From Oculina patagonica (lineage: Eukaryota), in NCBI RefSeq assembly GCF_052425735.1, contig NC_135771.1, positions 21,142,001 to 21,206,000 of the forward strand: a stretch of DNA of 64,000 bases. The letters are read 5' to 3'. The notes under the pieces were generated by a model. That model had not been told where the DNA came from and did not search any database. It worked only from the letters and a program-made list of their open reading frames with translations. Made by a program: the position numbers and the translations under genes. This document shows, piece after piece, positions 1 to 51,074 of this stretch (its first letter is position 1; each line of letters opens with the position of its first letter).

Positions 1-118
1 CAGGAGTCGTTGAACAAGTCTTTTCTTTTGACGGGAACATACATCTCCAGCAACACTGAAGTTATATTACCGTCTTGTAGAGCTTTTATCATTGAGTTTA
101 AATCAGGGAACGTGGATC
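1..118 (-). CDS. Exon 39 (partial): S2 lobe, type II periplasmic-binding-protein-like
   Basis: [39 protein letters not shown]; open to window edge. Confidence 0.88.
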
Positions 119-3100
119 CTGCAGGAATGAAGGTCAAGTCACGTGCTATGGTGATAGAATGCGCACTGCGTTGAAACAATTATTTCTACAGAATTCGCGT
201 TTATCAATAAGAATATGACTAATCCTCCACTCACCGATTTCTATCTTGTTTCGGAATTTTTTAACCGCCATCTGGTGTTCAGAAGAGTTAGCGACCACTG
301 CAATCTATAAGGAAAGTAAACTTATCATATTCTGCTCAACAAAACTGTCTCGTAAATAGTTATTTATGAAAATCAGGGGTTTCAAAATGTTTTGAAGTAG
401 ACGTCAGCAACTTGAGGTGTGGGCGGCTGTGACAATGCTGAGCTTGTTTGCCACAATGCAAGCTGATTACTATGAAAGAGTAAGCCTTCTCGCAGTCTCG
501 ATTTCTTTTGCAGGGCTAAAAAGGTCTCGGACTCGCAGAAAAAAAAAAACAGTCTCACCGTCTCGCAAAGTCTCGCATTTACCATTCGCCACCCCCTATA
601 TAATCAAGTAGCCGGCTAAACTCAGGCAGTTGCCGAGCTTGTCTCGTTTTCTCTGTTGAATACAATACAATACAATACAATACTTTAATTTGACACTCCC
701 CTTACGGGGCTTTTCAGTGACAATAAATTACAATAGAAATAACAATTTTAAAATTATAAAATTACAATGGTAAACATTACAATGATAAAACATTACAATG
801 ATAAAAATTTGGATAAAATGAATTACTCCTAATTAATCTATGTTAAAAACTCCTCCATTAATTTTGAATGACATGACAACACTAAATTAGCTCTGGTATG
901 CATGTTTTTGTCAGACAAGCTACTTTCACCTCGAAGCCTCGCTTTGAAAGTGCAGTTTGAAAATTTTGTCATGAACTATTTCCAAGAGCAGCAAAGATAA
1001 AAAGAATACGAAAGTAAAAACAGTATGAATATGCGAGAGGTTTGAGGATGAATTTGAGCCACAAACGTAATCATGCATAATGTCCATAATACCTTGCTGT
1101 CAGCAGCACCTGTGGGACTCACACCATTTGAATTCATTGAAATGACTGTAACAGTGAGCACTGATGCCAATGATCCCATGAAGATAGCGAAAATAACGAG
1201 TCCAATAAGAAACCAGGCCATTGCAAATATCTTGGCTGGCATGGATTTTGGACAGCGATCACCGTACCTGTGTAAAAAATAAATTCCTTTTTCCCATGTT
1301 TAACAATTGCTGATTGCTGATACAGTTTGCAACATGTAAGAGCTGATAACTTTTTAGAAGCAGCGAACTCCCATTGTAATGATCAACGAGTCAATTTTCT
1401 AAAGTAAAGTAAAGTAAAGTAAGCGACTTTGAACGGCTAAAAACAGACTCAAAACAGACGTGTATTCATTGTGCATGGCCGTTCAGCTCCATTATCTGAG
1501 AATTACTGGTGTCAGGTTTCATCGACTCTCCATATAAAGGCGGACACCTCTCTAAGACGGACAGTTAGGGCAGGTCCCGAAAGTGTCCGTCTTAGAGAGA
1601 GTTGACTATATTAACCAATATAGTGAGGCTGCCAACACATATAGTTACGCTCTACAGGAAGTCACTTTTTTTCTGTCATCAGTACATAACATATATATCC
1701 TGCGATGTACGCAGTATGCCATAGGTGGGAGTGTGCTTACTAAAGACTTGTCCTACAACGCTGCACAACAACAACGAAATGTGATTTTTTTGGTTTACAA
1801 TTTGCTAAATACTAAAACAATAATCCTGCTTAATCTTGCAGAGTATCTTCTGATTTGAGCGAACTCGGTATACGGCCTCGTCAGCTAGGGTTAGCTAGGT
1901 ATCAGGCGATATTCTGCTCGATTTTGCAGGATGTTTGTCACAAGAAGGCAACAAAACCCGAGCCAACTACCAGAAACTGACAACGAACAGTATGAAGAAG
2001 ACATTTGGGACCGTCCAAGGGCACTCGCTTAAAAGATGTAGATTATTTCGTTTATTACTGCAAGGAGGTGGTAATTCTGGATCCGTTCTGTAATTTTAAC
2101 TCACCCCACTGTGGAAAAGGTAATAACAGACCACCAGAGGCCTTCACCAACTCCCTTGAAAAACGTTCGGGGGAAATGTTCCTGATTGGTTCTGGAGTCC
2201 TGCGAGGCAAGAAAAAATAACTTCAGTTATGCACCGACAATAAGCCAATAGAGTAATACAGTCCATTGAATTTGATCGCCCACATGGGTCACTTTCACTA
2301 CTCAAAATTATATACAACCTTTTCACCTTCCGAGACAAACCTCAAAAATCAGTGCAGTTTTAAGAGAATAAGACCATTCAAATGAAAGCTGTTGAGCAAT
2401 ACTTTTCGGTGGCTAGTGGTGGATATCTGATTCACCTCGCCGCTTCGTGGCTCGGTAAATATCCACCACTAGCCACCTCTACTTTGGTAAAGTTGTTAAT
2501 TATACTGTACAAACTGGCACCTTTCAAGTCTTTAGAAGAAACTCCCACGTATAACCATTCAAATGAAAGCTTTTTAGCAGTACATTCATGTGGTTTTGTT
2601 AATTATGCTGTACAAGGGTGTTTTATAGCTTATAGGTAGGAGTATAGATTCCTAGTGTACGTATGCCCATTCAAATTCATGTTATTTAGTAGTACGTTTA
2701 GAAGAAATGATTGTCTTAAATTTGGCACGACTTGGAATGCAAGTCAGTCAATCAATCAATACAATCTTTATTCAGTGATCAGAATGCACGCTTAGCTAAA
2801 AAGCTAGTTAGCAGGTGCGTACACCATGAAATAAAAATACAAAAAGAAAAAGAAAACTTCTTTGGAAGTGAATAAATTAAGTTAAGCTATAATATACATG
2901 AATCATACAGTAATCGTATTAGCTCACCAGAATCCAAATGATAATTCCCGCTAGAAGAGCTGTTACCAATGTGAGAACGAAAATTGGCCAAAACTCAAAA
3001 ATGGAGTTTGCCATAACTTTTGTTAGCAAACCGCTATCAGTGCTTTTCTTCTGAATAACCACAATACCAGGGACAGTTATAACCGGAATGAACTTGCTGT

Positions 3101-6100
3101 ACTCCGTGTCACCATAGGCCTGGGTCTTGATTACTGGAAAGGACACATGGTCTCCCTTGGAGCTGCTGTAGGAGACTAACTTCGTGTCATTGTGTTCTTC
3201 ACATGTCCCGCACGTGGTGGTCACAAGGTCACTGATGATACTTGTGAGCGAGTTAAATCCTGATGATTCTAATGGACTTTGAACTACGGAGACACTTAAA
3301 TGCTCCGTGCATCGACAAGTTTCTGAGAAGAATTCAAATTGTCGTTAGTTAGAAAGCAAGAAACTGAAGACAATGGAAAATAAATTATTTAATTAAGATA
3401 TAACTGTTAAAACACAATTAGATTTTATTCCATATGTCCTTTAAATACTAGAGCATTTCTTTTTTTGGTAAATCATAACTGCTGACCTATCTCACCCTTC
3501 AGCGCTAACCCTGGCTTTGAACTGGTCACGATCTTCCTGAACTCTCATTTGAATTTTTTTAGAGCCGGCGTTTCCAAAGTAAAGGCCCTAGCGAATATCT
3601 CTATTGTCATTTGAATACACGTGCAAATAATTTTTAATCACGTTTTTGTTAATTATTGGTCTTGCGAACAGTTCGTGGTTGCCTTTTACGACTATTTTTT
3701 CGTCTAGTGTGCATTTTAGGACGTTCGCGCTAATTTTTTATGCGCATCCCTACTGCGCACGTATTTCATGTCGCAACGCCATGCCACGTCATACTTTGAG
3801 CGCACGCGCTGAGTAAAATTTCTAAAAACATTTAGGTTGGGTTGCCGTTCCGCTTGCTTCGTTTGCAATTTGCTCTCTTAAATGGTCGGTGACCCCTACT
3901 TTTTTCTTAACGGATCACTTTTGTTAATCAGTATCTACGTTTTGCGAGAAAATGAAAAAAATCTATCGAGTGGAAGTTGATTTTGTTGACACACTGACGG
4001 TTTGAATTCTGCTTTTTGAGTTTTCCTTTTTGCCGTACGACAGTTTTAAATACGTTTCTTCTGGGTTTGGTTTTTACCAAAAAGATGGCAAAACTAGGAA
4101 TTATTTACGAAGAGACGCACTTCTACAAAATGTGACTAAGATCGTTAGCCTTCGTTTACTCATCTTCGATATATTTAACTTTAAACCCTGTAAACCATAC
4201 TGAATTACGTGCGCCAATTTTTCAAAATCAGGGTAGTTTTCCACACGCTTTCTCACTGAAACGAAGTCGGTGACCCCAACTTTTTTTGCATTTCTGACAC
4301 AAGTAACTCATTATCTTGCCGCAGTAAAAAATTAAAAAATCTATCGAGTCAGCTTTTAGACAACTTGTCCGTCTAGACGACAAAATCGTCTTCCTGGAGG
4401 GCCAAATCAACGGACAAAAACAGACGACTTTTAGGCCCAAAATCGTGTTCGTCCCGCTTTCACACTACGACGACTTGTCCGTCTCAGATGATTTGTTGGT
4501 CTTCTAGTGTGGAAGCGGCCAATGAGTTTTGATGCAAGGAGCTAGATACATAGATATTATATATTTTTTTTCATAATAGTTAATACCTCCATATACAGGT
4601 TCACTAAAGTTTCCTATCCCGTCAGTTGTTAGAACTGCCACTTGAATCTTGTACATTGTGTAAGAAATCAGATTGGTGAGAAGTATTTCATTTACATCAG
4701 CACAAACTATCGCCGTATAATTTGGCTCAGCAAGTAAGTCCACGATTGGTTCACCTCCGATACGGACGGCTTGATACTTTATGTAAAAACCACCCAAATC
4801 TCCACTCAATCTTTCTTTTGTTCCATGTTCCCAAGTGACCTTAATTGCGGATAAACTCATAGCGGTTGTAGCAGCTGTTTTAGGTGAACTGGTGTCGGGA
4901 GCTGAAAGAAAACAAACGTTACCCATAAATTGGATAACTCTGAACATCAAATAACACAACCCATCCTTACGACATCAAACAGGAGCTCGATAACGAACCG
5001 ACCTTTTCTTTCTCTCAAGCGGAAAGGCTATGTTGATGAAACATGACAGAGAATTATTTAAAACAATAAACGAAACGCATGTCATAGAGCTTCCTGCCTT
5101 TCCTTATAGTACATCCAACTGCTACTGTACTTAAACATATTTTTCCATCAATGTTGTGTCCAAACGGTAATGGACTGGGTGGAAGAGGAACTCAGAGGTA
5201 AGCATATTTGCTAATTTTTAATTCTGCGACTGATTTCTTGATAGGCTACTTGATAGGAGTTCAGTAACCAAGCAGACATACAGATATTTTTGTACCATAA
5301 AACCTCAAAGCAGGATTTACGAATTTTCGAGCAATTGAGCAAATTTTATCGGAATCCGAGCATGCGAGCAACTGCGATTATTTGCGAGCACGAGCTAGCG
5401 AACACTCGTCCAAATTTTGCGAGCAAATCGAGCAAAAGCCAAATTTTTGCGAGCATATTAATGGGGTCTTCAATATTTTAAGGGAAAATTTGATACCCCT
5501 TATATTCCTGATTAAGACATAATAAGGGAAGGCAGTTTTGCCAAATGCAAACAATAATAATATTATTGATACCCTTACTCTGACTAATGACCATTAGCAT
5601 AACCACACTGACCTACTATTGGTAATCGCGCGATCTGATTGGCTACACAGGTGCCTACTATCGATCCGTAGAAGGCTCTCGGAGCGCGCGCGTAGTCTTC
5701 GCTGAATTTTATCAATCAAAACCTTCAATAAATCAATTCTAGCGATATTCTGAGTTTAATAGATCGGTCAGTGGGTTATGCTAACACAATTAGACGGCTC
5801 GCTCTCGGTTTCTACCGGCTTTTGATAGTTGGCTCGGGGCTTCGCCCCTCGCCAACTATCAGCCGGTAGAAACCTCGAGCTTGCCGTCTAATTGTTAAAG
5901 AGAAGACAAAAGCTGAACTCACCAAAATTAATTTTTGTACAATTAGTCAGTGGACCAATCCCATTTTTGTTAATAACAGCCATTTGAATACACGTGTCAC
6001 TCGACAAGTTTATATTCTTTAGCTCGATTGACGAAAAACACGGAGCTACAAACCAGACACCATCAGATCCATTTACAAGCACTGCGTATCCTACAAGCTC

Positions 6101-9100: not shown

Positions 9101-12100
9101 AGTGGACTTAAATTTCGAAAAAATACAAAAAGGTCGCTAAAGCTCTAGAAACAACGTGCAAGTTTAAAATGCTGATCAGATGGTGTCGTTCAGATTATAT
9201 TTCTCCCAATTGCAAGTAAAAACATTATGCGCAATCGAATGTCGAGAAACGCCGACACTCTTTTATAGTATTTGATTACCACTTTTCAACTAAAACTAGA
9301 TGACCGAACTACACAAATTTTTGAGTTGATTAGCTTTGAGTTAGAACTTCAGAGCGGTGACTGAAAGAATTTCTTTAAAAAAAACTAATGGCATTGGCCA
9401 AGAGAGGATTACTTTGGTAGAAAAGGAATTACGAAAGCATATGCGGATAAAATCAAATTAACCCCTCCCTTTCAAAAAAAGACCTTCATGACCGTCATAC
9501 CTTTTCTCTTGCAGATGTAAGGTAAAGATTGTAAACAGTTTACAACATTCCAGTGACCTTGCACACTTGCACTCTTCGCCACACAAGCAATTCCATTTGG
9601 AATACCCTCTGTCGGGTTTTCGTACCAGTTAGTATAATCAAGATAATGCCCGTTACTCCAGTTCGGAAATCTTTTCAAGTTATTCTCATCTTCTATGAGC
9701 CCAATAAACACCTCGTTAATTGTGGACCTGATCATTTCTGAGTCAATAAACGCTTCTTCCTCGACGTTTAGTATATACAGTAGGTCTGCGTTTCGGTTCA
9801 AGCAGTCAATTTCGGCGTTGTACCAGTTAAGAGGATTCTCTTCAAGGATCAGGTAACAATTCGTTTGGAAGAAAATCCATCCCGGCAGACAGTCTTAAAA
9901 ACAAATATTAAACACAAATAAACATTTGATATTTGAAGTACATGACTATGATACTTCTTTTCTACTTACAACAAAATGCTTTACTATAACCGATTATATA
10001 GGTCCGATTATCCAGTAATTTAAGATCAATGGTTGATGTTTTTAAGGTAACCAAAAGTCATAATTGTTTACGGACTGAACGAAANNNNNNNNNNNNNNNN
10101 NNNNNNNNNNNNNNNNNNNNNNNNNNNNNNNNNNNNNNNNNNNNNNNNNNNNNNNNNNNNNNNNNNNNNNNNNNNNNNNNNNNNNNNNNNNNNNNNNNNN
10201 NNNNNNNNNNNNNNNNNNNNNNNNNNNNNNNNNAGGTATTTAGCTTTAAAAAACTAATTGGGGACATTATTTACATTAAAATCTACTAAGCTACATAAAG
10301 TTAAAAATATTTACACTTAAATTCTAAGAAAAAAAACCGTACTACATAGATGAATAGATAAATAAATGAATAAATAAAAAAATGAGAATAAAATATAAAA
10401 TTTTATAATAAAAGTAGGTATGAGTGACTGGACGTAACACTATATAACAATTGCCCTGCATTAAACCTGTGTTGCGGAAAAAGATAAAATACTCAATTAA
10501 GTTGGTAGCCGGCAGCAGCAGAGGACCATTGTGGAGGACCCGGGCTGCCACTTTGGGCACCTAGTATAGGGGAAGGTAATTCGTAGTCAAAAATAGTTGA
10601 GAAAGTTAAAGAAAAACGTCGATCAAAGGAACAATCAGGAATATATAGAGACTTTTTAAAAGAACTATTACTAACACCAAAAGTGATACATAATATTAAT
10701 TTACATGGAGTTACTTTGACAAGCTACATGCATATAGCATTAAAGAATACGTTTCACTTTTAGAGGAAATCATACTGTCAAGCTTGCACCGTTGGGAGTC
10801 TAGAAAATACTGCAACTTCGGTTTGATTGGTTAAAATAGATAATGACTGCAGTAAATATGCATCCTTACAGATCTTCCGTCTTCCGTTCGTGTTTTTTTT
10901 TAAAAGTATAGCCTTACCTGGAGATGTCGTTACTTTAGTGCAGTTGTTGTGTTCAACATCGCCAAGTTCATTGTAAATGAGAATTTTGACACAATACGTG
11001 CTATTTCTCTCCAAGCCAGCGACTGTGTAATTTGTAGTATTTCTTTCAACTGTTATCGTAACTTTAGTTTCATCAAGTACTCCTTGTTCTGTGATGCGTT
11101 GGTAAATTATTTTATACCCAGTCAGTTCTATAGCTGACTGACAAGGCAGGCTGTCCCAAGAGATCTCGAAGGAGTGGCTTCCGATGTTGTGTACTTTGAT
11201 GTCAGTAATTACAGGTGGCCATACTGAAGAACAACAATAATATCATATTAAAGGAAAACAGCTGCATGAAATAAACGTGAATTTCGGTTTTTCCCTCCTT
11301 GAGTTATATCACAACTACACCTAAAAAGATCGGATTCCCACACGGCAATCATGTAAAGCTGTTGTAATTAGTTTTAGTTTTTTTCTTAAGCTTAACTAAC
11401 TGAAATTAACTGACTAGCAGGATCGATTTTTTTGGCTGTTCTAAACATAGTAGCCATGAAATATGCTAAAAAACTTTTTTAGTTTTAATATTTTTATTCT
11501 GAATGTTTATTCTAACTTTTTAACATTTTTCAGTATTGCCTAATCGTCTTACCTTTGGGCATTTCACAAATGAAAGCTCTAATGCTGTTTTCACTAAGAT
11601 CGTTCAATAGGCCTTGTGTATTCTGCGGAATATCCTTTGACATCACCGTCACATTTCCGTTACCAGATGGCTGCCCACCTTGCCATTTACTGATCGTCAG
11701 TGGTCGTCCGTTCACCCACGTCCAATTCGCCCCGATTTTTGTCAAACCTATGTGCCATTCGCGGGGTTTCGCAATGCAACGTTTTTGAATCTCTTCATTG
11801 ATAAACTGCCATTCTTTCTCTGTTTCCATGGTTACTAGGTCGCCTCGTTTACCTTTGCAGGTATCTCGGTTCTCGTTCCATGTTTTGCCTGACTCCGTAA
11901 ATGAGTAGCAGGAATCCCCAAATAATACATTTCCGCTTTCTATAAAAAGAACAGAAGGATTTAACTCCATGTAAGCAGCAACGTCAATGAAGCGCCAGTA
12001 AAGCTCATGGAAAATTAAAAGTACAATTGCCGGTAGTAAATTCTATAGGAGTCTAATGGCACAGAAATGCCGGAGTGCAACCTGGTTTTTGTGGCATAAA

Positions 12101-15100
12101 AGGACTAAAAATATTAGCATTCTGTCAGGTTTTGACAATAGTTGACAGATACCCATTGATGGTCCTGGAAGAAGCACTGAGGGTTTCAACTGTTTTGTCC
12201 GAGAAAACAACACAATGAACCCAGCCAGGGTCACTTGTCGGTTCTGGAGCACAACATGCTTACCGTTAGGTCACCACATGCCCCAACCGAGGCTCGTAAT
12301 ACTGACATTGAAACAGTTATAATAGTGAAATAACCAGTGCCACAAAGTTTGCTCATTAAACAGAGGTTCGTTTACAAAGCTGTTAGTTTAGTTTAGTTTA
12401 GATTTATAGTTTAGTTTACTGGTTTAGTTTAGTTTAGTCTAGTCTAGTCTAGTCTAGTCTAGTCTAGTCTAGTTTAGCTGTGTTAGCTTTTAGTCTCTAT
12501 TTTCCTTGTGGGATTGCTTTTCAGTTGTCAATGTACTATAAAGAACTCGAAAGATCTTGGTTTGTTGTGCCCAATCCTTGGTTCTGCAGATCGTTACATG
12601 GTGACAGCGGTGGGATCAAAAGCAATTTAAGCAATCAGGAGAGTGGTAAAGTAGTCTTTGAGCACGGGAATTTTGTCTTGAAGATAATGCTCCTAAGCTC
12701 TGGCCGTACTGACATGCATATGTTAATAGAACTGACAGGTTAATTAGCACTGGTTAGTTGTTTGGGGCCAAAACAGTGACCTTTTTACGAGGAAGCCGCG
12801 TTATCGAGCTAATTCGAAAAAGAATGCCAAAGACAATAGCTGATAATCTGTATATCAGCTGTTTTCATGCTTATAACATTCCCCATGGGAATTCCTGATA
12901 TTATTACGTCACTCAACTTACCAATCTCGGCAAAAGGAACATGGCCGTACAACTCAATGCGCATGCACGGCATGTGTGTCCACTTCGTTGGCCAAATACG
13001 AACATATCTTGCATAAACTCGTTCAGCAAAGATATTCTTTCGTACTGTGTAGCTGTCGAAATTGCCAATTAAATGCTAGAAAATAATACAGAAAATATTG
13101 CAGTAGATTTTCATAAAATTTTAGTAGGTTTAGCGTTACAGTAAAATAGGACGCGTATGGGAAAAAGATTACCCAGCAGACACTGTGGTCTAACGGTTGG
13201 TTTGGGAAAAAGATGCAAAGGAGGATTATTAAAGGTGACTTTTTATTATCGTTTTGTAATGATGTTGGGTGTACAGTTATTGAACATACCTTGCCACCTG
13301 TTATATCGCGATAAAAGTCCCAGTTGGAACCGTCTTTTGAGATTTCCACTTTGTACTCTTCAACAAACGAGCTGGAATTGCTTGAATAACCTTGTGTTGC
13401 TACAGCGCAAACGATGTAAGTTGTGTTCAAGTCAACTTGAAGGTATGAAGGTAAAACCGACTGCGCACACCAGGCTTGTTCATGGTTTAGGCGACCCTTG
13501 TGAGCTTCAAACTTGTAAGCTTCACTTTCAGATGAATTAGATGTGATTTTGCTGTCCACTATGCGCCCTATCTCTATACCAATCGCTTCGTCTTCGCATG
13601 GCAGAGGTTTAAAACCTGAGTTTTGACACAAAAGGAAAGTTTGTATCCACACTGAATATTTAGATGCACAATTTTTTTTAATGGCAAACGCTGCTACGAC
13701 CTACCTCAGTGCAAATACAATCTATATTTTATCTTTTCAATGAAGGAAAAGATCTAGATGGTTTTAAATATTCCTGATGAACACGACATGGGACGGATCT
13801 AGGGGGAGGGTGCAGGGGCTGCGCACCCTCTCTTCCCTGAGATCACCGCGGCTTTCTAATACAACTGGTATTCTGCAAAATTTCAGTTACGCCATTCCTA
13901 AGTGGTGCACCCCCTCCTAAGAAAAATCCTGTATCCGCCCCTCCTGCTGGTGTGAGACTAACTAGCTGTAGGGAACTTACATGTCGACGTCGTGACCCAA
14001 GGAGTTGTTTTCAGGACTACTGAAAACAACTTCAGCTAGTAGTAGGATGGAGAATTTGAGCCTGAAAACTCCGGATACAAGTCAAACGCCCTTAATCAAC
14101 TGGCAACTCTGCCTCCATAATGATATCAACATCTTGATTGCGGCCTTATGCGCCTACTGGCGAGATGAGTCATGATGATTGAAGTAAACAAAACATGATA
14201 GAAAAAGAAAGAGACAGCAACATTGGTATTTTGACCTAGGATTAGGAGTGTTTTGTAACATAGTTTGATAAGACTTTTCTCACCTTTTTTCTTACAGACG
14301 TAAGGTCTCAGTCGAGAACACTTCTTATCTGACCAGTCTCCATCGTTGGACACTACGCAGTTTGAAACATCGCCTTTACTTGTATCTTCTTCCCTAAAAC
14401 TTGAGAAGTTATAAGGTGTTCCATCACTCCACTGAAATACTCCTTCCTGTGCCTTATCGTTCAGTCCTATCCAATGGCCCCCTTCACCAGGGATTAAGGT
14501 TGTGTTTATAAAGTTGTTCTCAGCGCTGCTGGTTATGGACACCAGGTCAGAATGTAAATCAAGGCATTCCTTTCTGGCGTCTTCCCAGCTTGCTTGCCTT
14601 TGAGAAGCTTTATAGCAAAAGCTTTCATATCGAGTCCATTCTGTTGAACACTCTGAAATTGAGCAGGAAAAAACATCAATTGTCAGTACTGGTCCTCTTG
14701 TGTAACAGATGCTATTGTTTTTGGGCAAGAAGTTGGCACATAAAGAAGACTTTATAGGGTCGAAAAGAGGAGGTGCGTGACTGAGTGGCCGGAGTCTTGA
14801 GGCGTTTTGCTTTGAGCCCAGAGTCCCAAAAACTTTGTAAAAAGTCATCTGTCTATTTCTTGGAAACAATAGAGAGGGAAGTATATCCTAAAACATCGTT
14901 TCAAAAAACACTCATGAAACCAACTCCTGACTTTTTTTTTCTGTAAAGCTTCTCAACCATTTATTTATGTCACTGATTGAAAGTTCTTGTCACGAGAAGA
15001 ATAATGCAGAGGCCAACCTTTCGAGGTAATGTATGTAAAAAAAAACTTCGCTTTGGTACTGATTATATAAAAACAAACAATATTATCAATCATTCCACGA

Positions 15101-18100
15101 AATTGAGTCGTACAACGATTTTTAACCAACCGAGGAGGCCCGTAGAGTACAGTTGTTGCTTTCTTCATATCGAACGGCGATGTTGATTAGAGTTATTGTT
15201 TTGCATACAGGCAAACACGTTTTTAATTACCAACAGCAGTATCACCATAAAAAGAAATATTGTCACATGTATTTCGTGCTACTGTTCTACTTAAAGGAAA
15301 TGAGATGATAACTTACAAGTAGCTAACCAATCATAGCGCACGCTTGGTCATTTCTAACGGTCTAACGGTCACGTTTATAATAATATCGAACACGTTATAT
15401 TTTTAACGTTACCTTGACAACCATAAAGTTCTACCCTCATCGATATGTGGTTATACCAAGTCACTGGTACAAAACGAATATAACGAGCCCTGATTGGTGG
15501 GTTCAGCTCATGAGAAACAACAGTGTCGCGGTCTTCGTTTCCAGCAAATTCCTAAAACATTCAGGTGTCGAAATGGTAAGTTAGGGTCAAATTATCAAAC
15601 GTAATATCTTTTCAAAATAAACCTAAGAAACTTTAGATATCATCGAGTGGTACATCAGCATCAGATCATGTGATTTGTTTAAAGTGCCCACTACATGCAA
15701 ATGAAGCAATATTCTCGCTGCAATAAATTTTAAGAAATCAAAAAGGGTAATCAACGCTTCGATGACCTTCGATGGATAAAGTCCAGTTCACCTGACACAG
15801 CGGCCAAGCGAAGAAAGTTTGCGGCTAACTTCCGTTTTCACTGGCATGAATTTTAGTTTATTTATTTCAAGCAAGACTGGAAATAAATGATTTTATGTAG
15901 CTAGCGACTTAATCACCTCCCAATTTCTGGTTTGGGGAAATTCCTACCATCTGGTATGTCACTTCATGAGTTCTTACATGAGGGTGAGGCGAGCCCACAG
16001 TCAATCTTCTTTTATCATATTCTCACATGGCGGACTCGATTTTTTTCCCTCCCTCCACGTCCACGTGACGAAATATTGTTTGACCGACCACGATAACAAT
16101 TATTAAATTCTCATGCTGAAAGTTTACAATACAATACAATACAATAGTCGTTTAATGTGTCATACACTTAGCAATACGGTGTGACATTCAGAAATGTCAC
16201 ACCAGCTAGTTTACAGGTATTCCACCTAAATTAGTTTAAAAAAAATTAGAATGAGTATTTCATAAAAATGAGAAAAACATTTGCATTTTTTGTTTCGCTA
16301 TTTCGCTACACATGTGCCCGCTGAGTAGTTTTACCTTGTCCGTGGTCTGTCCTTGTTCGATGTAGCACCGGAAGGACACTTCATCGTTACTGTACTGCAG
16401 TTTATACCTGGTTACCCACTGACTCCAAACATTTCTTCCTTGCGTTGCTACGCCCATTACTCTAAAGTGCTGACTACCCAGATCAACCTGCAGCCATTGA
16501 TTGACATCATTTGTGCCAGCTACCCAGGCTCCCGCTTTACTTCCTGTTTGTTGAAAGTTTAGTCTGCCCTGCTTGGCGGCATGATTTTCACTCCATTCTG
16601 TAGAGGCAGTAATTTTAGCATCCAATATTGCTCCGCTTTCCATACCGACGGCGTCTTGACATTCTAAAAGCCAGGTTTATGGTACAATGTTAGTAAAACT
16701 TCAGAGCAGTTTTCAATTTAACCAGTGGCAAAAATGAGAGGAGAATTGCTTTGACGAAGTTGCACTGTATGATTAACATCCTGAACAACCCAACCCCTAA
16801 TGCTCAATTATGAGGGGTAGGTTGCAACGATAAACAAATGATTAATTTTAAAAATCTCGTTTCATCGATCCAACCAATCAGATCAAAAGCCAATACCAAT
16901 CGCAAGCCGGTCACTCGTAACTCGCGGCTTCGATTTGCCGCTGGCACGAGTCCCCGAAAAGAGCCTGCTCGCAGGCTAGCCCTTCGCGTCAGACAAGTGT
17001 AGTAGCCTCAAATTCTCATTGATTCATTTTTTTTTTTCATTTGTTGTAACTGGCTATAACGATTGCTTTGGAGTTGGTTTTGCAACATACACTAGAACCT
17101 GCTTCTTATAAATGATTATTTTATGCATTTCCGACAGAGCAGTGCAAAATTGAGCATAATGCTATGGACGTTTTACAACAGACGTAAGCATAGTCCAAAA
17201 TTATCCAAGGAATTTGACAGCCTCCAGAGTAAACCACCTTTAACCAATCAAGCTGGAGTTTAATCTTCGGTATTGATGTTCCCATCAGTAGCTTGCCGTT
17301 TAGAATTATGGTGGATTTTGAGCCATTTGAGCAGTTGTTGCAAAAAGTCCATTACGGCGAGACATTTCTATTTCTTTGTATAAACACGTTGCCGACCGTT
17401 TCAGGTTTGTTGCTAAATGTGTTTCAGCTAAAAACAATACGGTAACTCACGAAATATGCGTCGTTATCTCAACCGTTTAACATATATCACTTTGTGTGTT
17501 AAGTATTCCCTGCTATATGAAAAAACGTTCTACATGTTTGCAAAATAAATTGCAAGAATCTTATCAATCTTTTAACAAATTTCATTTGGTATGGGTTTTA
17601 CCTATATGAAACCTGTTTCTTTATAAAACATCGAAGAAGGGCCAAGCCCGAAACATTTGTTCATTTTAAGTCTTTTATGTCACTTAAAGAGTTTTTTCAA
17701 ATTTTAACAAATGTATACAGAAATAATGCAAAAATAAGCCATGATCTCACGCTTAATTTTGGGACTTGGCTCGATTTCCGCCTTCTCGTGTCCATTTTCA
17801 CGTACAGGGGCTGGAAATCGAGCCTATTGTGCGGTTCATTCTCTGGGTGGCTTCAGTATTATCAGAGGGAAATTGGCGCTTTAGTACGGTAGAAAAGCTA
17901 CTCAGGCTCAAATATAGCGTACAGTCTCCCACGGCATCTTGATATATAAGAGGTTCTGAATTTCCTACCTTTTTTCAACGTTGTGACGTTGACGCATGAG
18001 CTCAAAGCTCCGTCTCCTACGGTGTAGGCCAGCAACTGAACACAGTAGTAAGTATTGTGTACAAGGTTTTTTACTGCCAATGACGTCACGTGGGCATCTA

Positions 18101-21100
18101 CAACTGACATGTGTTTTACGACCTGTTCTGCATTTTTTACGTACACTTTGTATTTCTGGACTATCCCGTTTCTTTCCTGCTCTGGAACCTCTCCCCATGT
18201 GATAAATATCGTATCGACTGCTGTTGCAGTGACTGAAATGTTAGCTGGTGGTGCAGAAGGAGCTAAAGGAGAAATGCATTATTAAAGATATGTTATAACA
18301 TTGACATTTTTTTGAAAAAGATAGACAATCAATCTGTCAATCAATAAATCAATCACATTCTCAAAAAACTTACTCCACTCACTCACTCACCCACTCAATC
18401 AATTAAATAATCAATCAAACAATCAAACAATCGATCAGTCAATCAACCAGCCAATCGATAAATCAATCAATTAACAAATATTCAGTCAATCAACAAAAAA
18501 TCAAACCAGACGTCAATCCATTTTTTACAAAAGTCATATTGACAATGGCGTCATGACAACACCGAAACGTTAAATTTTATCGTTAGTTTTTGCTTGTCTG
18601 TGTCAATCAATACTAGGGGTCATACTAGTTCACTATTTTGGATCGATTTTAAAATGATGCTAGCCCCAGATGAATGGGATGCTTGTCCATCGCAAATTAC
18701 TTCTCGGCTTTCCGTCAGGTTGCCTCAGCAATTCGCCAGTACTCGTTTAAACTTCTGGGTGGAGAGAGGCACTGTGAGTAAAGTGTCTTGCGCAAGACCC
18801 AACAAGCGTAGGGAGTCATTCTAGTAAGACCATGCAAGAGCTGCTACCCGACCCGAAGAAGTGAGCAGACAAAGAGTACTTTTACAGGGTCAAGTGGAGG
18901 AGGAATGTGACTGAGTGACTCGAGACTTGCTTTTTGTACACTTGCTCAAAGTCGCTCGTTTTTTGTGTGTCCGGATAGGGTTACGCTTAAAAAAAGTAAT
19001 AAGAAACCGCGCGCTAAAACCCGCGCGGAATCTATTTGTCCGTGCGTGTTGGCACGCGAAGCGCACTTAATCCACAAATAGCTCGCTCGTTAAGCGATTC
19101 GCCGCCATTTTATTTTGCAAGCCGGCGCGCCCCCTTCATTTCTGTATCCGGCGGTCTGCTGGGTAATGAAACGAGCGACTTGGATGAGTGTATATGCTTC
19201 GAACTCTGCTTGTTTCATTGTTTTTAGGTTTGTTGTTACTTATTATGATTGCTTGTGTTTTGGTTTTTGACATAAACTTTTCGACAGAGCAGTGCAGTCC
19301 AAAACCATTACTCCAAAATTCTAGATTTAAATTCAGAACCATGCAAATAGCAATGGATTTTTTGCAACAAATGGTCGCATGGTCCAAAATCTTCATAAGA
19401 ATGCAACATCCTCCAAAGCAAAGCGACTTCAACCAAGCAAGGTTGAGTTTTCTTTGGTATGGATGTCCCAGTCTGAAACTTGCCGTTCAACGTGGCAGAT
19501 TTTGTACCATGTGATCATTTGTTGCAAGAAGCCCATTCGGACATAATCTTCTTATTTCCTTTTCTGAACACATTATAGTGAACTACCAGCCCATGGTTCA
19601 TTTCTAAATGTCTTTCAATTGAAAAAGTACCGAAACGTATGTTATCTCAACTCGTTACATCAAGATTATTTTCTCTTGTTAACATACAGTATATCCTTTG
19701 TGCGTTAAGTCTTTGCTCAAATACGGGTAATAAATTTGCGCTTGCAGGGTCGTTATGTGAAAAAATTTTAGATGCTTGCAAATTGCAAGAATATCTGGTC
19801 GATGTATTAAAACTACGTCGTTTGGTAATAGTTTCAACATGTTGAGAAAACGTTGTTCTTTAAAATGTATACCGAAATATTTCGAAAATGAAAGGGCTCC
19901 TCCTCCGGCATGGGTGGCTTCAGTATTATGAAAGAAATTTTGCGTTTCATAAGTAGAAAAGAAATTGTGGGAGTAATGTTAAGAAATCTGTTGAAAAAAA
20001 TTTTTGCGTTTGAAATAAGTACAAGCATGTATTTTTGGATAAGAAACTAAAAGGACGTTCTACAGTAAGGTAGCTGAAGTATGCAATGTCTCGAATTGGT
20101 TGTTGCTTGGTATTGAATTACCGCGCGCAAGTATACAACCAAATCTCTGACTTCAATTGAGCGGGAAGAATTGAGCGCGCTTAAGTCTCATCCGCCATCT
20201 TCAAATACTGATGTTCTTACCTTTTTTCAACGTTGTGACGTTGACGCATACGCTCAAAGCTCCGTCTGCCACGGTATAGGCCAACAACTGAACACAGTAG
20301 TAAGTATTGTGTACAAGGTTTGGTACTTCCAATGACGTCACGTTGGCATCTACAGTTGACTCGTGTTCAACGACAAGGTCTGCATTTTTTACGTAGACTT
20401 TGTATTCCCGAACTATACCGTTTCTTTCCTGCTCTGGAACCTCTTTCCATGTGATAAATATCGTATTGACTGCTGTAGCACTGACTGATATGTTTGCTGG
20501 TGGTGCAGAAGGCACTTAAAGAAATGAATAATTTAAATGTTATTACACTTGACAATCAATCTGTTTATCAATCATTCAGTTAATCAACCACTATCTCAAA
20601 CACTTACACAGCGCTCACTCACATATTCACTCTCTCACTCAATCAATTAACCAGTCAATCAGTTAGTCAGTCAGTGGGTCAATCAATCTATCAATTAATA
20701 AACAGCCAATCAATCAATCAGTCAATTAATTACCCAATCAAGAATCAATTAATTAAACAACAATCTATCTATCTATCTATCTAGCTATCTATCTATTTAT
20801 CTATTTATCTATTAATCCATCCATCTATCAACAAAATGCAAACAATCAATCGAGACATCAATCCAAACCTCAACTAATTATAGCTCATTCACTATTTTTG
20901 TGGGGGAGAATGAATCGAATTAAAAAAAATGCCAGACCTAGATGGATGGGATGCTAGTCCATCCCAGGTTATACACTAGCATTCTGTCAGGCTGTCCCAA
21001 CACTTTTCCGTACCTATTTATGGGTATTTAGCCATTTATGTGAGACCCTGTGAGAGCTGCCACCCGACGCGAAGAAGTAAGCGTAGGAAGAGGACTTTAT

Positions 21101-24100
21101 AGGGTCAAACGGGAGGAGGGCTGTGTCTGGGTGCCTGGCAACTTGAGGCTTTTTGTTGTGAATCTGGAGCCTAATGGTGGAATTCCACTGACGCGTAAAT
21201 TTTTACGTGCGTGAAAAAAATTAGAGACAATGTATGAGCGGCCTGCGTAAACGTGTACGCAGGCGTTCATACATTGTCTCTAATTTTGTTACGCACGTAA
21301 AAAATTACGCGTCAGTGGAAATCCACCATAAGGCTAACTTAATTTTACATAGTCGCACATGAACTGTTCAATAACTAGGCGCGCAGAGTCGAGTTGTCTA
21401 TATAACGGCGAGTATGAATGTAACAACTGTTCAAATTATATAAGCAACCCCTTACTTACTTACCAACAGAGCTATTGCCATTAAAGAAAAAACATTTTTT
21501 CCACTGATATTTCGCGGGATTCTTCTACTTAAGGACGTTTGGGCGAATATTATATCTAACAGTCCAACGGTCACATTTATAATCTTATAATAATGTTGAA
21601 CACATTAACTTTTAACGTTACCTTGACAACCATAAAGTTCTACCCTCATTGATATGTGGTTTTTCCAATTCACTGGTACAAAACGAATGTAACGTGCCCT
21701 GATTGGTGGGTTCAACTCATGAGAAACAACAGTATCGCTGTCTACATTTCCAGTAAATTCCTAAAACAGTAAGATGGCAAATGTTAGATCAGTATCATAC
21801 TATCAATCTTGATTATCTTTCCAAATAAACTATATATTTAATTGAAAAGAGAATGATGATTCCATTAAATTGTTAAAACTGTTTGCATTTGGCTTCGATA
21901 TTTTTTGAAAGTTTGACATCCGTGCAACTTTACCTTGTCCGTGGTCTGTCCTTGTTCGATGTAAAACTGGAAGGTCGCTTTATCATTACTGTACTGCAGT
22001 TTATACCTGGTGACCCATTGTTGCACGACCGGACTGGTGTGATTTCTTCCTTGTGTTGCTACACGCGTTACTGTAAAGTACTGACTACCTAGATCAACCT
22101 GAAGCCATTGATTGACACTATTATGGCGAGCTGTCCAACTTCCCTGTGTACTTTCCGTTTGTTGAAAGTTCAGTCTGCCCTGCTTGGCGGCATGATTTTC
22201 ACTCCATTCTGAAGAGGCAGTAATCTGAGCGTCCAATATTGCTCCACTTTCCATGCCGAGGGCGTCTTGACATTCTGAAGGTCAGGTTTTTGAAATCAAT
22301 AAAAAACGTTGTAATAGCCTCATAGCAGTTTTTAATTCAGTTTGGAAAGTAATTCGGGATTGCTTTTTACGCTGTATGATAAACGTCCGCTGACCAACCC
22401 AACCATTAGTGCTCAGTTATGAGGGGTAAGTTGCGATGGAAAATAATAATTAATTAATGATTAGTTTTAAAAACTCGCGCCATATACTCAACGAATCAAA
22501 TAAAAGCCAATACCAATCGTTACTTGGTCACCCACGGTTTACCGTTATCGGACCCAGATGAGTGTATTCGAATTGTCTTGTTATAGTTGGCAATTACGGT
22601 TGCTTTAGTTTACGTTTTGGTTTTGGTTGTGCGCGACTTAACTAAAACCAGCCCTAAAGAAATGTTTATGTCATATATAATTCCAGAACCGTCTCTTCAA
22701 AATTCCTCAGTTAGCTTTAGAATTCAACACCATTCACTAGACCGTTTACAGGAAATAGTCTTATGGTACAAAATCTATCATGTTGAATTGCATAAGAATG
22801 TGACAAGCCTCAAAGCAAAGCAGTGACATATGTACATGTTAGCTTGTGGTGTGAAAGGCGATAAAAGAAATGCATTATTAAAAACATGTTATTACATTGT
22901 CAATTTTGTTTAAAAAAGACAATCAATCACTTTCTCAAACACCTACACACCGCTTACTCAATCAATCAATCAATCAATCAATCAATCTATCTATCAATCA
23001 ATCAATCAGTCAGTCAGTCAGTGAATCAATCACTCAGTCATCAATCAATCAATCAATCAATTAATCCAACAATCCCTTAATTAATCAATCAACGAATCAA
23101 TCCATCAATCAAAGAATCAGCATTCAATCAATCAATCAATCAATCAGTCAGTCAGTCAGTGAATCAATCACTCAGTCATCAATCAATCAATCAATCAATT
23201 AATCCAACAATCCCTTAATTAATCAATCAACGAATCAATCCATCAATCAAAGAATCAGCATTCAATCAATCAATCAATTAACCAATCAACAAATCAATTA
23301 ATTAACCAATCAACAAATCAATCAATCAATGAACCAAAAATCAATCAATCCAAACATCAATCCAATCTCGATCAATAACAGTTTACTTAGATCAGGATGC
23401 TAGCCCTAGGTGGATGGGATGCTAGTCCATCGCAAGTTGCGCCCCAGTATTCTGTCAGGTTACCCGAACAATTCACTGGTACAAATTTACAAAACTGGGT
23501 AAAGAGAGGCACCGTCAGAGTAAAGTACCTTGTGTATGAACACAACAAGAGTAGCGAGCCGTTTATGTGAGACCTTGCGAGGGCTACTTCCCGACGCGAA
23601 GAAGTAAGCATAGGAAAAGGACGGACCAATTTAGGTTTTTGGGAAACTGCTCACCTACCCCTCCCCAAACCTAACATTTTGCCCAAGGCGATAAGTAAGG
23701 GTTAATGTTAGGTTTGGGGAGGGGTAGGTGAGCAGTTTCCCAGAAACCTAAATTGATCCAAAAGGACTTTATAGGATCAAATGGAGGAGGGGTGTGACTG
23801 GGTGGCTGCAGACTCGAGACTTTTTGCTGTGAATCCGGAGACTAAGGCTTTGTAAAAATCATCTTTGAATGAAAAGGAAGTAATAGAGTTGAAAGAATAT
23901 CCTAAAGTATCTTTTTCTAAAAATACTTCAAAAAACCAACTCCTGACATTTACAATTTTCTAAAAAGCCAGTCAAGTGGCGCACACATGGTCATATTCAA
24001 CGGTCTATTGGAAAGCGTTATTTAATAATATTTTATCGAACACGTTTATTTTCCAACAGTACCTTGACAACCATATAGTTCCACCCTCATTGATATGTGG

Positions 24101-27100
24101 GTATTCCAAGTCACTGGTACAAAACGAATGTAACGTGCCCTGATTGGTGGGTTCAGCTCATGAACAACAACAGTGTCGCTGTCGACATTTCCAGCAAATT
24201 CCTAAAACAGTTAGATGGCAAATATTAAATTAGTATTTTACTTTCAATTTTAATCCTTCCATAATCCATCCTTTCACCTCGTACAGCTGTGAAACGAAGA
24301 ATAAAAGTTAGACGCGGCTACTTTCTAGTTTTTGCTGGCATGAATGTTACAAGACTTGGAAGCGTAATGTGCAACAGGTTCCAAGAAAAATGACACAAAA
24401 TAAAGCAAGAAACCAAAATACGTCTCCAAAAAATCTCTTTCACAATGTAAACAATTTTTAAATTCTCATGAAAACATTCGTTGAATAATGCTAAAAGTTT
24501 CCATAAGAGCCTTACGTACATGTAAATTCGTATCCCCACCGGGATACAAAAGGGAAGGGTGGATGCTACCCCTTCGGGTTTTCGTTCTATTAATTAGTGC
24601 ACAGCGTTTTTTTTTCCACTGAGTTGCAATTTAGGGTCTTACTGTCAAACGTAATCATTCCTAAGTAAACATAAGAAACTTCATTTAAAGAAGCTTTAGA
24701 TCATCGAGTGGCACATCGCGTCATGTGATTTGCTAAAGAATAAATTATTGCTCATTACATGCAAATGAAGCAATATTTTCGCCGCAACATGAACAAATTT
24801 GTATTATTGATCTAAAATTTCTGCCTGAAACTGACTTGGGTAAACGTTTATAAAAACTTAAAGACGTTTCGACCGAAAAACAGTTCACAATTCTGCGCGT
24901 GCTACGCTATCAAAAGATAGCAAACGACCGCTGCTCGTGATAATGCAAATGACTTTTTTTTTTACAATAACTGCAGAAATTCTCGCTCACTTTCATTGTC
25001 AATAAGCGGACAGACCACTTGACAGTCACATAAATCGCGATACTGACGCGTACGCAACGAACGAACGAAAACCGGGAATTTAATTTATGTGGGTGTAGGG
25101 GGTTCGTTCGAGTTTGTTATTGTAACAAAACAAATAAACGTTCGAAGATTTGCGAAGTTGCCCGAAGACTTTAGAGTATGATCCGAAGATCTTTAGATCA
25201 AACATAGTATCAAACATAATTGACGTCAGCGATATCACCATAAAGTTATTGTAAGTTTAATAGTGTTCAATTGCATTTTATTCTATTTTTTAGAAATCAT
25301 ATTTTATGAAATTATTTTTTATTTTATTATTATTTTTTTTAATCTAATTTTATTTTTTAATACCCTCGACATGGTACCCTCGACCCTCGACATAGTACCT
25401 TCGACCCTCGACATGGAACCTTCAACCCCCGACCCACGACAAAAACCCAGACTCTGTTTAACAATGTTGAAAATTTTTTTAATTGTCATGTACATTTGAA
25501 TGGTTGCCACAGACATCAGTTCCAAATTTCCCTGACTTTTTCCTGACATTTCCCTGTTAAAATAAAATTTCCCTGACCAAATAAATACGAAATGTAAGAT
25601 ATAGTAGCAGCCTCTAGCCTCCACTTCCAACAAAATGAAAAATCATTTCCTGACCTGTGGCAACCCTGATTTGGCGTATAATGCTCAAAGTTTCTGTAAA
25701 TGCCTTATTACTGCACTAAAAAGGATAAACATCTCGTGAAACTGAGAAACAATATTTCGCTTGGTCTCGGCAGTTTTTGGCGGGAAACAGACACATGTGA
25801 CCGCTGTGTAGTTTTTACCTTGTCCGTGGTCTGTCCTTGTTCGATGTAATACTGGAAGAACACTTTATCGTTACTGTACTGCAGTTTGTACTTGGTGACC
25901 CATTCGGGCCGGGGCAAACGATCATCACTGCTTCCTTGTGTTGCTACACGTGTTACTTCAAAGTACTGACTGCCCAGATCAACCTGCAGCCATTGATTGA
26001 CATCAGTTGTGCCAGCTGACCAAGCTGTGTCTGTGTAAAGTCTGCTCTGGTTGGCGGCATGATTTTCACTCCATTCTGAAGAGGCAGTAATTTGAGAGTC
26101 CAAGATTGCTCTGCTTTCCATACCAAGAGCATCTTTACATTCTGAAAGCCAGGTTTTTGGAGCAATGTTAATATAGCCTCAATTGATATCCAGTTTTTTA
26201 TATAAACAGTGTCGAAAGTAAGCCGAGAGTTGCTTTGTGTCACGGATTTTAAAAAATACAGGTTATGTCTTCAGTTAAATGTTCAAAGATAATGTATTTC
26301 ATGGGTAAAGTTTTATTGGCGGATCTAGGGGAGGGGCCCAGGGGGGCCTGGGCCCCCACCTTATATTTAGGCCAAATGCAGGCCCGTAGGGCCGAGAATA
26401 ATTAAATAAATCAAATTAATAATTAAATTAAATAAAATAAATTAAATTAATAATTAAAATAGTAAATTCATTAAATACTAGAATTCATTATAAAATACTA
26501 AAATTCTTAAAAAATTACTTAAATTCATTATAAAATTCTAAAGTTATTTAAAAATACTAAAGGTCATTATTGAATAAAAACGTTTTAATCTTAATTTTAA
26601 AAGTGTCAACCGATGGGGCACTCCTCACATCAAGTGGGAGAGTGTTCCACAGTGCTGGTGCGCTTGATGAAAATTCGCGCCGCCCGTAAGTCTTGGTCTT
26701 AAATACTGGTTTGTGCAGTCGCAGGTGATCATGGTTGGAACAAAGAAACCTTATCGGTTGATGAATATTTATAAGTTCCGCTAAGTAACTGGGTGCTAAA
26801 CCATTTAAAATTTTATAAGTAAAAAGTAAAATCTTAAAAACAAAACGCTTGCGCACAGGCAGCTAGTGCAGCTTGCGGAGGAGGCAATTAACTGCTGACG
26901 TCACAAAACATATTACTTCTTACCAATCCGAAAGAGCAAGCAAATTAAGCAAAACATAAAGCTTTTCACTTCTCGACAAATGTTAGTAACTTAAAACTTG
27001 GCTACAGTGTTGCATAATGCTGGTAATTATTAGTTTGACAAGGTCACATTATGTCCCAGAAAAGCACTAGTAGAAGCTAGTAAAGATATGCCGGAAACAG

Positions 27101-50180: not shown

Positions 50181-50296
50181 ACCCTGCCAGTAGGGCCTCT
50201 TTTATTAAACTTCCCTGTGTCTGAAATTTGGGAAGTATATAAGTGGAAAAGACAGGGCTCTGCTTGCAGGGAGAAATTAAAACATGAGAGAATTAA

Positions 50297-51074
50297 GGAC
50301 GGTGCCTACTAATAACAAAGTATTTTTTCCCGGCCGAAGACTATGCAAGAAATGTAGATGTTACCAAGGGCTACTGAAATTTAAAAAGAAAATTGGGGGT
50401 AGCCACGCAAATTTTCGAGATAATTAGGTTTGAAATCTGGAAAAAAGTGCTGACGTGGCATTTTAAAATAAAGTTGAACTAAATACAATTTCCTTGCAAA
50501 TTCCATTTGAAATTGGTTTTTCATGAACGAAATCAACATTAAATATAACAATCTTTACAATAACTAACAAATAACATGTGCTCTATAGACTTACCACTTA
50601 CATTTTATAAAATAAAAAGTAGGGGTCACCACGCGTTTTTAAAAGTTATACCAGTTGTTTTCAGGTTCTATGAAATCGCTTTTGGGGTCTGTTACATTTT
50701 TCCTATCCCCTCCCTAGCGAGTTGAAGATTTGCATCTCGCGCGTGCACTACGCCATTTGTCACGGTTAGCAGTTTGCGGGTAACGTTTTAGCGCTTAGCG
50801 ATTTATTTTTTACTGTTAATGTGAGCCATTTTCAGTGGTAAGCGGTCAATGGTTACTGATATGTTGATTTTCCGCTGTTCCTGGCTTAGGATATGTCCAT
50901 AAACTGGATTTCGTCGCAGAGAAAACTTTCTTGATTTTTAGTCGCGCGCTTGTTCGCGTAGTTGAATTCGTCATTTTGAGCGAGCAAATTAATTAAAAGC
51001 GCGCGCGCCCAGTGTGATCGATGCATTGCGTGATGCGCAGAACAAGCGCGCAGTAGCAATAGGAGGCACCGTCC
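50297..51074. mobile_element. Non-autonomous DNA transposon with TTAA TSD (Kolobok-like), inserted in the satellite tail
   Basis: TTAA|GGACGGTGCCT...AGGCACCGTCC|TTAA. Confidence 0.88.

Follow-up and report, generated by a model that had tools for sequence, protein, structure and literature searches.

The window analysed here is a stretch of 64,000 nucleotides from the coral Oculina patagonica (NCBI RefSeq assembly GCF_052425735.1, contig NC_135771.1, positions 21,142,001 to 21,206,000), and positions below are those within it. Positions 1-3322 of its minus strand likely contain the greater part of a channel module that belongs to a very large type I membrane protein of the coral. This module has the layout of ionotropic glutamate receptors (iGluRs) and of the bacterial receptor GluR0 and is probably a K+-selective, ligand-gated channel. 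It consists of the two halves of a clamshell (S1 and S2), between which two membrane helices (M1 and M2) and a pore loop (P) with the K+ channel filter TVGYGD are inserted. The architecture and the family assignment can be regarded with high confidence; the combination of ligand gating and K+ selectivity, to which analogy with characterized relatives points, is favoured less firmly.

The K+ filter is rebuilt by splicing

Assembled contigs of four public runs (X1-X4) were placed on window positions 1-6000. Together with the sequence itself and with Pfam matches, they give the following layout of the channel module and the region upstream of it, in which a slash marks the place of the intron:

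1-118, minus strand: S2 exon with the conserved acidic pocket residue (E in LLEMY); runs off the window; RNA joint 117>234.
235-304, minus strand: S2 exon with the conserved S/T position and an animal-specific Glu, from alignment columns; RNA joints 304>1093 and 117>234.
1093-1267, minus strand: exon with (G)YGD, the M2 helix (which resembles iGluR M3) and the start of S2; begins G TAC GGT GAT CGC TGT; Pfam and RNA joints.
1268-2104, minus strand: phase-2 GT..AG intron of 837 nt inside TVG/YGD; donor GT 2104-2103, acceptor AG 1269-1268; skipped in contigs of X1, X2 and X3, and in X4 with a diverged flank.
2105-2199, minus strand: exon with the M1-to-pore linker and the pore helix; ends ACA GTG GG, the final GG being bases 1 and 2 of the codon for the filter glycine; sequence and RNA joints 2198>2927 and 1265>2103.
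2928-3322, minus strand: exon running from S1, the first half of the clamshell, through the pre-M1 segment into M1; its S1 part has CxC and CGxC cysteines and an NDT sequon; RNA joints 2198>2927 and 3322>4587.
4587-4901, minus strand: last fibronectin type III (FN3) exon; Pfam fn3 1.4e-7; RNA joint 3322>4587 in contigs of 2007 and 3456 nt.
5891-40388, minus strand: upstream ectodomain exons with repeated FN3, F5/8 type C (discoidin), three C-type lectin domains and a thrombospondin type 1 (TSP1) repeat; open stretches, ten of them with Pfam matches.

In the joined message the filter reads ACA GTG GGG TAC GGT GAT, exactly as a preliminary description of this DNA had proposed in postulating a phase-2 intron within TVGYGD, and the spliced product carries STVGYGD with the WW aromatic cuff in its pore context. 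On its own, the exon at 2105-2199 (a 32-residue piece) gives a weak Pfam match to Ion_trans_2. The exon at 1093-1267 matches Lig_chan at 3.6e-6 (profile positions 63-100) and Ion_trans_2 at 5.8e-4, and a protein atlas search with its 55 residues returned Ion_trans_2 and Lig_chan clusters only. Pfam finds nothing above noise in the S1-M1 exon alone (Ldh_1_C, 0.059) and has no match for the two short S2 exons.

Spliced mRNA is indicated by the contigs, since they skip introns with GT..AG ends, namely at the joints 117>234, 304>1093, 1265>2103, 2198>2927, 3322>4587 and 4901>5923. The filter joint, for which 1265>2103 and 1267>2105 are equally good placements, is carried by contigs in X1, X2 and X3; in X4, which bears a third organism label, the joint is there too, with the Val-Gly codons in a diverged form, GTCGGA, so that contigs of all four runs support the splice. 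A 2007-nt contig (record 16 of X3) spans five successive exons, the first an FN3 exon and the last the M2 exon (5923.., 4587-4901, 2927-3322, 2103-2198 and 1093-1265), and a 3456-nt contig (X2) extends from the S1 exon through about 2.6 kb of mRNA further upstream, past position 5998. Because these two contigs span both parts, the channel module is co-transcribed with at least the proximal ectodomain exons; the distal ones presumably belong to the same transcript.

It should be noted that summed contig depth is very high over the intronic stretches 401-600, 1401-1800 and 5400-6000 in each of the four runs (up to about 8800), and that loose ends and odd joints abound there. Dispersed repeats or sequence derived from transposons, transcribed elsewhere and not part of the mRNA of the window gene, are the probable cause.

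The flanks of the pore are predicted to form a GluR0-like clamshell

The S1 part of the exon at 2928-3322 amounts to about 100 residues with paired cysteines, followed by the hydrophobic M1, and the last FN3 exon is spliced in frame straight to it, with no LIVBP-type (leucine/isoleucine/valine-binding-protein-type) amino-terminal domain between. For the clamshell, models were built of relatives with 33-39% identity to the window sequence, not of the incomplete protein of the window itself. AlphaFold2 reached a predicted local distance difference test (pLDDT) of 83 and a predicted template modelling score (pTM) of 0.70 on a 79-sequence alignment headed by the Stylophora member, and a pLDDT of 85 on the core of P0076, a Nematostella member of FN3 type that is the nearest full-length relative. 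Both models show a bilobed S1/S2 clamshell with the pore inserted between its lobes, the arrangement by which the iGluR superfamily is recognized, and GluR0 is the best structural match of the clamshell. The best 50 Foldseek matches of the Stylophora model in the PDB are all iGluR chains comprising the ligand-binding domain (LBD) and the transmembrane domain (TMD), from GluA, GluN and GluK, with about 450 aligned columns, E of about 1e-12 and 13-17% identity.

When an S2-only family profile is compared with solved structures, the matches are the Synechocystis and Nostoc GluR0 LBDs (2e-7 and 6e-7), followed by bacterial amino-acid-binding proteins, and no eukaryotic iGluR appears at E<=10; only GluR0 matches S2 significantly. 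The top 60 matches of the whole family profile are K+ channels only, reached via the pore (LmK, Shaker, KvAP and KcsA, 5e-14 to 1e-9). The pore thus resembles that of a K+ channel, the flanks those of GluR0, and the overall build, including a further membrane helix (M4, see below), that of an iGluR. The end of M2 aligns with the iGluR M3 gate region (SYTANLAAF), where the family consensus is IISIFTATVTTSLT and the motif is only partly conserved. The preliminary description had named as fatal to an iGluR-type pore either grouping with ordinary K+ channels combined with flanks devoid of a binding-protein fold, or a splice without RNA support. By sequence the pore is indeed closest to K+ channels among solved structures, but the whole models align to iGluR LBD-TMD chains, and the splice has RNA support.

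We place the N-terminal part of the protein outside the cell because FN3, discoidin, C-type lectin and TSP1 exons lie upstream and because short paralogs have clear signal peptides. With the clamshell and everything N-terminal to it outside, the pore loop should, on the analogy of GluR0 and iGluRs, re-enter from the cytoplasmic side, inverted with respect to K+ channels. The connectivity bears on the same question: extracellular FN3 is spliced to S1-M1; N-glycosylation sequons occur in the window S1 (NDT) and in the S2 exons (NSS, NIT), along with the paired cysteines; and the models superpose on iGluR LBD-TMD chains. The iGluR/GluR0-type architecture put forward earlier is supported, also by the Lig_chan match. 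For GluR0, both a topology opposite to that of canonical K+ channels and K+ channel activity have been established experimentally (PMC13099474).

The family shares the pore helix and filter sequence with canonical K+ channels such as KcsA, LmK, Shaker/Kv and KvAP, but probably has the opposite membrane orientation. It has neither a voltage sensor nor a cytoplasmic gating ring, and its gate would be coupled to an extracellular clamshell. Nor is the canonical topology matched, given that extracellular domains join the N-terminal end of M1 and the clamshell joins the C-terminal end of M2.

An orthologous gene supplies M4 and is under purifying selection

Through an exon-level match (P0001) we identified the orthologous locus on L001, a 187-kb contig of a related coral. 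Its domain order is that of the window, namely: Lectin_C, F5_F8_type_C, fn3, fn3, fn3 and then the channel. The filter is split alike with different synonymous codons (ACG GTC GG/A TAT GGT GAC), and the S1-M1 exon of the window is 75% identical to its counterpart. The spliced core is an uninterrupted frame of 450 residues comprising the rest of S2, M4 and a helical tail that ends at a stop, the continuation lying at L001 positions

13571-13851: first stretch,
14817-14973: M4, and
15643-15824: tail.

The M4 helix, for which a search downstream had been suggested, reads FFEPSSPYFLKTMVISVALLFLAVLCGLFYQTV and is followed by basic residues. The window itself ends inside S2; M4 and the cytoplasmic tail are thus seen in the ortholog, and the helix is also present in both AlphaFold2 models (Stylophora and P0076).

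Over the 283 codons shared by the window and L001, dN/dS is 0.17 at a dS of 0.77, with a value of 0.16 for M1-P-M2 by itself. Within the six filter codons there are 5 differences, every one synonymous. These values indicate a working gene under constraint. Just downstream of the last exon of the orthologous gene, L001 carries a retroelement (18626-20612; RVT_1, Exo_endo_phos and a Baculo_FP_2nd-like open reading frame).

The window gene belongs to a widespread animal family

A phmmer search with the S1-M1 exon (2928-3322) matched 221 family proteins. The cnidarian members come from hexacorals, octocorals, sea anemones, Hydra, Hydractinia and a scyphozoan, and the bilaterian members from three hemichordates, two annelids and a flatworm. 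Their common core of about 500 residues comprises a signal peptide, S1 (about 110-130 residues), M1, TTVGYGD, M2, S2 (about 130-170 residues), a further transmembrane helix and a helical tail. In full-length members Pfam places Ion_trans_2, Ion_trans and Lig_chan all on one M1-P-M2 stretch, with Ion_trans_2 scoring above Lig_chan. What is added N-terminally varies from member to member: nothing, CUB-Ig, EGF or FN3 arrays; many members have about 500 residues and lack adhesion domains altogether.

The spliced core of the window (283 residues) is 33-39% identical to family members over about 280 residues, and in a tree it groups with Nematostella members of FN3 type (99 in the Shimodaira-Hasegawa-like approximate likelihood ratio test). 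Among 120 family cores the filter is TTVGYGD in 115, TTLGYGD in 2, STVGYGD in 2 (the window and its ortholog) and TTVGFGD in 1.

In databases the members are labelled uncharacterized, 'Potassium channel domain-containing', or with ectodomain-derived names. Since such names derive from the ectodomain or the filter, they hide the receptor-channel architecture. As examples, P0076, P0115, P0201 and P0303 are named 'PTPRQ-like', 'protein sidekick-1', 'Cubilin' and 'Potassium voltage-gated channel subfamily F member 1'.

The putative ligand pocket lacks the carboxylate-binding arginine

Pocket positions were compared in an alignment of 120 animal and 69 bacterial cores. The S1 column of the carboxylate-binding arginine holds R in 85% of the bacterial sequences and K, T, L or S in the animal ones; in the window the residue is D, beside a Y. 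This bears out the earlier statement that S1 lacks the glutamate-binding arginine. By comparison, the acidic residue of S2 is D in 95% of animal and 94% of bacterial sequences and E in the window (LLEMY), and the S/T position of the pocket is kept. Two residues are animal additions: a Glu two residues after the S/T position (86%; NSSEH in the window) and a Tyr after the Asp. The S1 of the window is short, yet similar to that of P0076, which is predicted to fold as a full lobe.

Because the carboxylate-binding arginine is lost family-wide, the ligand is probably not an alpha-amino acid bound in the classical way. The conserved Asp/Glu, the added Glu and the aromatic residues, together with the missing Arg, hint weakly at a cationic or amine ligand.

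Proposed mechanism and alternatives

By analogy with GluR0 and iGluRs, we infer that four subunits would form a K+-selective channel with the filter toward the cytoplasm and the M2 bundle crossing outward. Closure of the clamshell on its ligand would open the outer gate through tension on the M2-S2 and S1-M1 linkers. The current should be carried by K+, because the T/S-T-V-G-Y-G-D filter is intact and the WW cuff is present; activation would then produce K+ efflux and hyperpolarization, i.e. the protein would act as an inhibitory receptor channel. The FN3/discoidin/lectin array, which takes the position of the amino-terminal domain of iGluRs, probably serves to anchor or modulate the channel by binding matrix, glycans or cell contacts.

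Several points weigh against this reading. The remainder of S2, M4 and the tail of the window gene lie beyond position 1. A simple scan of the minus strand at 38-64 kb (Met plus hydrophobic core) gave no convincing signal-peptide exon, and the signal peptide previously ascribed to the gene was not found by it. As the S1-only family profile matches none of the solved-structure sequences, S1 is recognizable by fold only; since Pfam does not call SBP_bac_3 on family members either, the clamshell rests on the AlphaFold2 models of relatives. That X1-X4 are RNA is only a guess. With the canonical ligand-binding Arg missing, the clamshell domain might bind no small ligand at all. Finally, K+ selectivity and gating are inferred for every family member, and GYG-bearing pores are not invariably K+-selective, those of HCN type (hyperpolarization-activated cyclic nucleotide-gated channels) being poorly so.

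The last point underlies the alternative of a ligand-gated channel that is non-selective among cations despite its GYG and hence excitatory like ordinary iGluRs. The HCN-type precedent speaks for it, as does AvGluR1, which shows that a eukaryotic iGluR is able to carry TXVGYG (PMC3483616). However, the window gene has the full K+ channel context, i.e. the WW aromatic cuff, T(S)TVGYGD and the Asp after GYG; the pore profile matches the highly selective LmK, Shaker, KvAP and KcsA; and GluR0, the closest characterized relative, has K+ channel activity (PMC13099474). We therefore consider non-selective conduction unlikely.

Slightly less likely again is that the protein is an adhesion or matrix receptor whose channel module serves as a structural or signalling scaffold and does not conduct, or does so in unusual circumstances only. 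Such a role was long argued for delta-type glutamate receptors. The huge FN3/discoidin/lectin ectodomain, the loss of the glutamate-binding Arg, and the adhesion-protein names that NCBI pipelines give to relatives (PTPRQ-like, sidekick-1, Cubilin) would all suit such a role. A scaffold fits poorly with the retention of TTVGYGD in 115 of the 120 family cores and of TVGYGD in the window's STVGYGD, with constraint on M1-P-M2 like that on the rest of the gene and filter codons that changed only synonymously, and with the many members of about 500 residues that have no adhesion domains.

Bacterial relatives and origin of the family

By sequence, the nearest relatives outside animals are bacterial proteins of GluR0 type. 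In a protein search with a hemichordate member, bacterial proteins bearing SBP_bac_3, Lig_chan-Glu_bd, Lig_chan and Ion_trans_2 rank straight after the animal family. Among the best 80 loci from a scan of 185,579 prokaryotic genomes, nearly all code for proteins with the GluR0 layout, about 350-400 residues long and with the GYGD close to residue 190; these align with the animal query across S1-pore-S2 at 25-30% identity. The animal and bacterial consensus sequences match in the M1-P linker (NPEEF), the pore helix, the filter and the end of M2 (IISxFTAxxxSSLT). The family thus shares with GluR0 (Slr1257 of Synechocystis) and other bacterial GluR0-type proteins the order S1, M1, P, M2, S2, the filter TTVGYGD, an NPExF linker and the M2 end. 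Nonetheless, the animal proteins add M4, a cytoplasmic helical tail, S1 disulfide cysteines, introns and, often, large adhesion-type ectodomains, and they have lost the ligand Arg. The minimal three-segment layout of GluR0, without M4 or N-terminal domains, is accordingly not that of the window gene and its ortholog, which have M4, a tail and a very large ectodomain.

A quick maximum-likelihood tree was computed from 49 animal and 40 bacterial GluR0-type cores; it is unrooted and excludes animal iGluRs, AvGluR1, plant GLRs and Kv channels. The animals form one side of a fully supported long branch and are nested in no sampled bacterial group. As regards the broader phylogeny proposed earlier, the tree answers the part that sets the animal proteins against the bacterial GluR0-type ones, with the animals as one clade, and is restricted to those two groups.

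The intron within the filter is informative in the same respect. The split is a feature of the family and not peculiar to the window gene: the phase-2 form GG/N TAY GGN GAY is common to L001, Stylophora (L083), the Nematostella FN3-type gene (L084) and the hemichordate Saccoglossus (L082). That position and phase are common to anthozoans and a deuterostome indicates that the intron predates the cnidarian-bilaterian split. In Hydra vulgaris, where tblastn missed the short pore exons, a direct motif search found the filter uninterrupted (L085, about 11462-11520; ACA GTA GGA TAT GGT GAT), which suggests intron loss in the Hydra lineage.

The preliminary description had left open whether the gene is an ancient retention or a domesticated horizontal transfer. 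The single clade, the taxon spread and the shared intron favour an old animal ancestry. Recent transfer of a bacterial GluR0 gene into animals, with introns gained later, could draw on the fact that the nearest non-animal relatives by sequence are bacterial and that the S2 profile detects no eukaryotic iGluR LBD. It is disfavoured by the shared old intron, identical in anthozoans and Saccoglossus, and by the presence of the family in Cnidaria, Hemichordata, Annelida and Platyhelminthes; moreover, the animal proteins fall within no sampled bacterial lineage, and the GluR0-sized bacterial proteins have no M4 or cytoplasmic tail. We regard it as improbable. A very ancient transfer, before the cnidarian-bilaterian split, and vertical descent are indistinguishable with these data.

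Least probable, and contradicted by the data, is that an ordinary two-helix or Kv-like pore was captured by exon shuffling into an adhesion gene, with ordinary orientation and no binding-protein fold in its flanks: although the whole profile finds only K+ channels in its top 60 and Ion_trans_2 outscores Lig_chan, both AlphaFold2 models have a GluR0-like clamshell across the pore insertion, the S2 profile detects the LBD of GluR0 at the sequence level, nearly all of the best bacterial relatives have the size of GluR0, which fits GluR0-type proteins better than plain K+ channels, and the extracellular ectodomain spliced just upstream of S1-M1 would force the inverted orientation.

Relation to known glutamate receptors

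According to textbooks, the glutamate receptors of animals go back to a fusion, in bacteria, between a binding protein and an inverted K+ channel. To our knowledge, no form with a K+ filter was thought to be retained in animals except AvGluR1 of the rotifer Adineta vaga. The latter is a eukaryotic iGluR with TXVGYG whose LBD crystals hold glutamate, serine and phenylalanine (PDB titles), i.e. a classical amino-acid binder, whereas the present family lacks the Arg and is closer to GluR0 in S2 sequence. Animal iGluRs (AMPA, kainate, NMDA, delta, epsilon and lambda) share with the family the LBD-TMD architecture including M4, Lig_chan on M1-M3 and the acidic S2 residue. In contrast, they have no GYG; their pore carries a Q/R/N site, and they are non-selective cation channels. 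They have an LIVBP-type amino-terminal domain where the window gene has its FN3/discoidin/lectin array, their identity to the family in structural alignment is 13-17%, and SYTANLAAF is only partly recognizable in the family.

The kind of channel is therefore already known, GluR0 and AvGluR1 being iGluR-superfamily members with a K+ filter; the animal family with M4, a lost Arg and swappable ectodomains is undescribed in the literature searched. A full-text search, which did not cover subscription-only papers, found work on GluR0, AvGluR1 and chimeras and no published description of the family. Because annotation misnames the members after their ectodomains or as Kv subunits, the family is easily missed in ion-channel censuses. 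With a large, conserved and expressed animal family that combines GluR0-like sequence, a K+ filter and M4, the transition becomes testable by electrophysiology and structure. The family may also give cnidarians, hemichordates and annelids an additional class of fast inhibitory receptor channel.

More tentatively, the family could have survived as an intermediate between GluR0 of bacteria and the glutamate receptors of animals. It would have been K+-selective and M4-bearing already in the cnidarian-bilaterian ancestor, would be inhibitory, and would respond to a non-amino-acid, perhaps cationic, ligand. Giant forms like the window gene would then use interchangeable adhesion, lectin and discoidin ectodomains to link the binding of matrix, glycans or cell contacts with the opening of a K+ channel. 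No class of contact- or glycan-modulated ligand-gated K+ channels is described in the literature searched. We put this forward as a possible scenario, with distinctly lower confidence than the channel assignment itself.

The ectodomain and other features of the window

Within the ectodomain part of the gene, near-identical FN3 exons alternate with discoidin exons over positions 14740-33960, in agreement with the recent intragenic tandem array that had been claimed there. The same part of the gene contains an assembly gap of 149 N at 10085-10233. Further upstream on the minus strand, positions 47700-50300 hold long open frames of a repeated FHFEFPHVLTS-like unit, which resembles a tandem minisatellite and not a gene. 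At 58358-58798, also on the minus strand, there is an open stretch of 147 residues, rich in Ser, Lys and Pro and containing MSTTKKNKPPTLVLQQENVKK; it looks like an exon of a different gene, encoding a cytoplasmic protein, upstream of the receptor gene.

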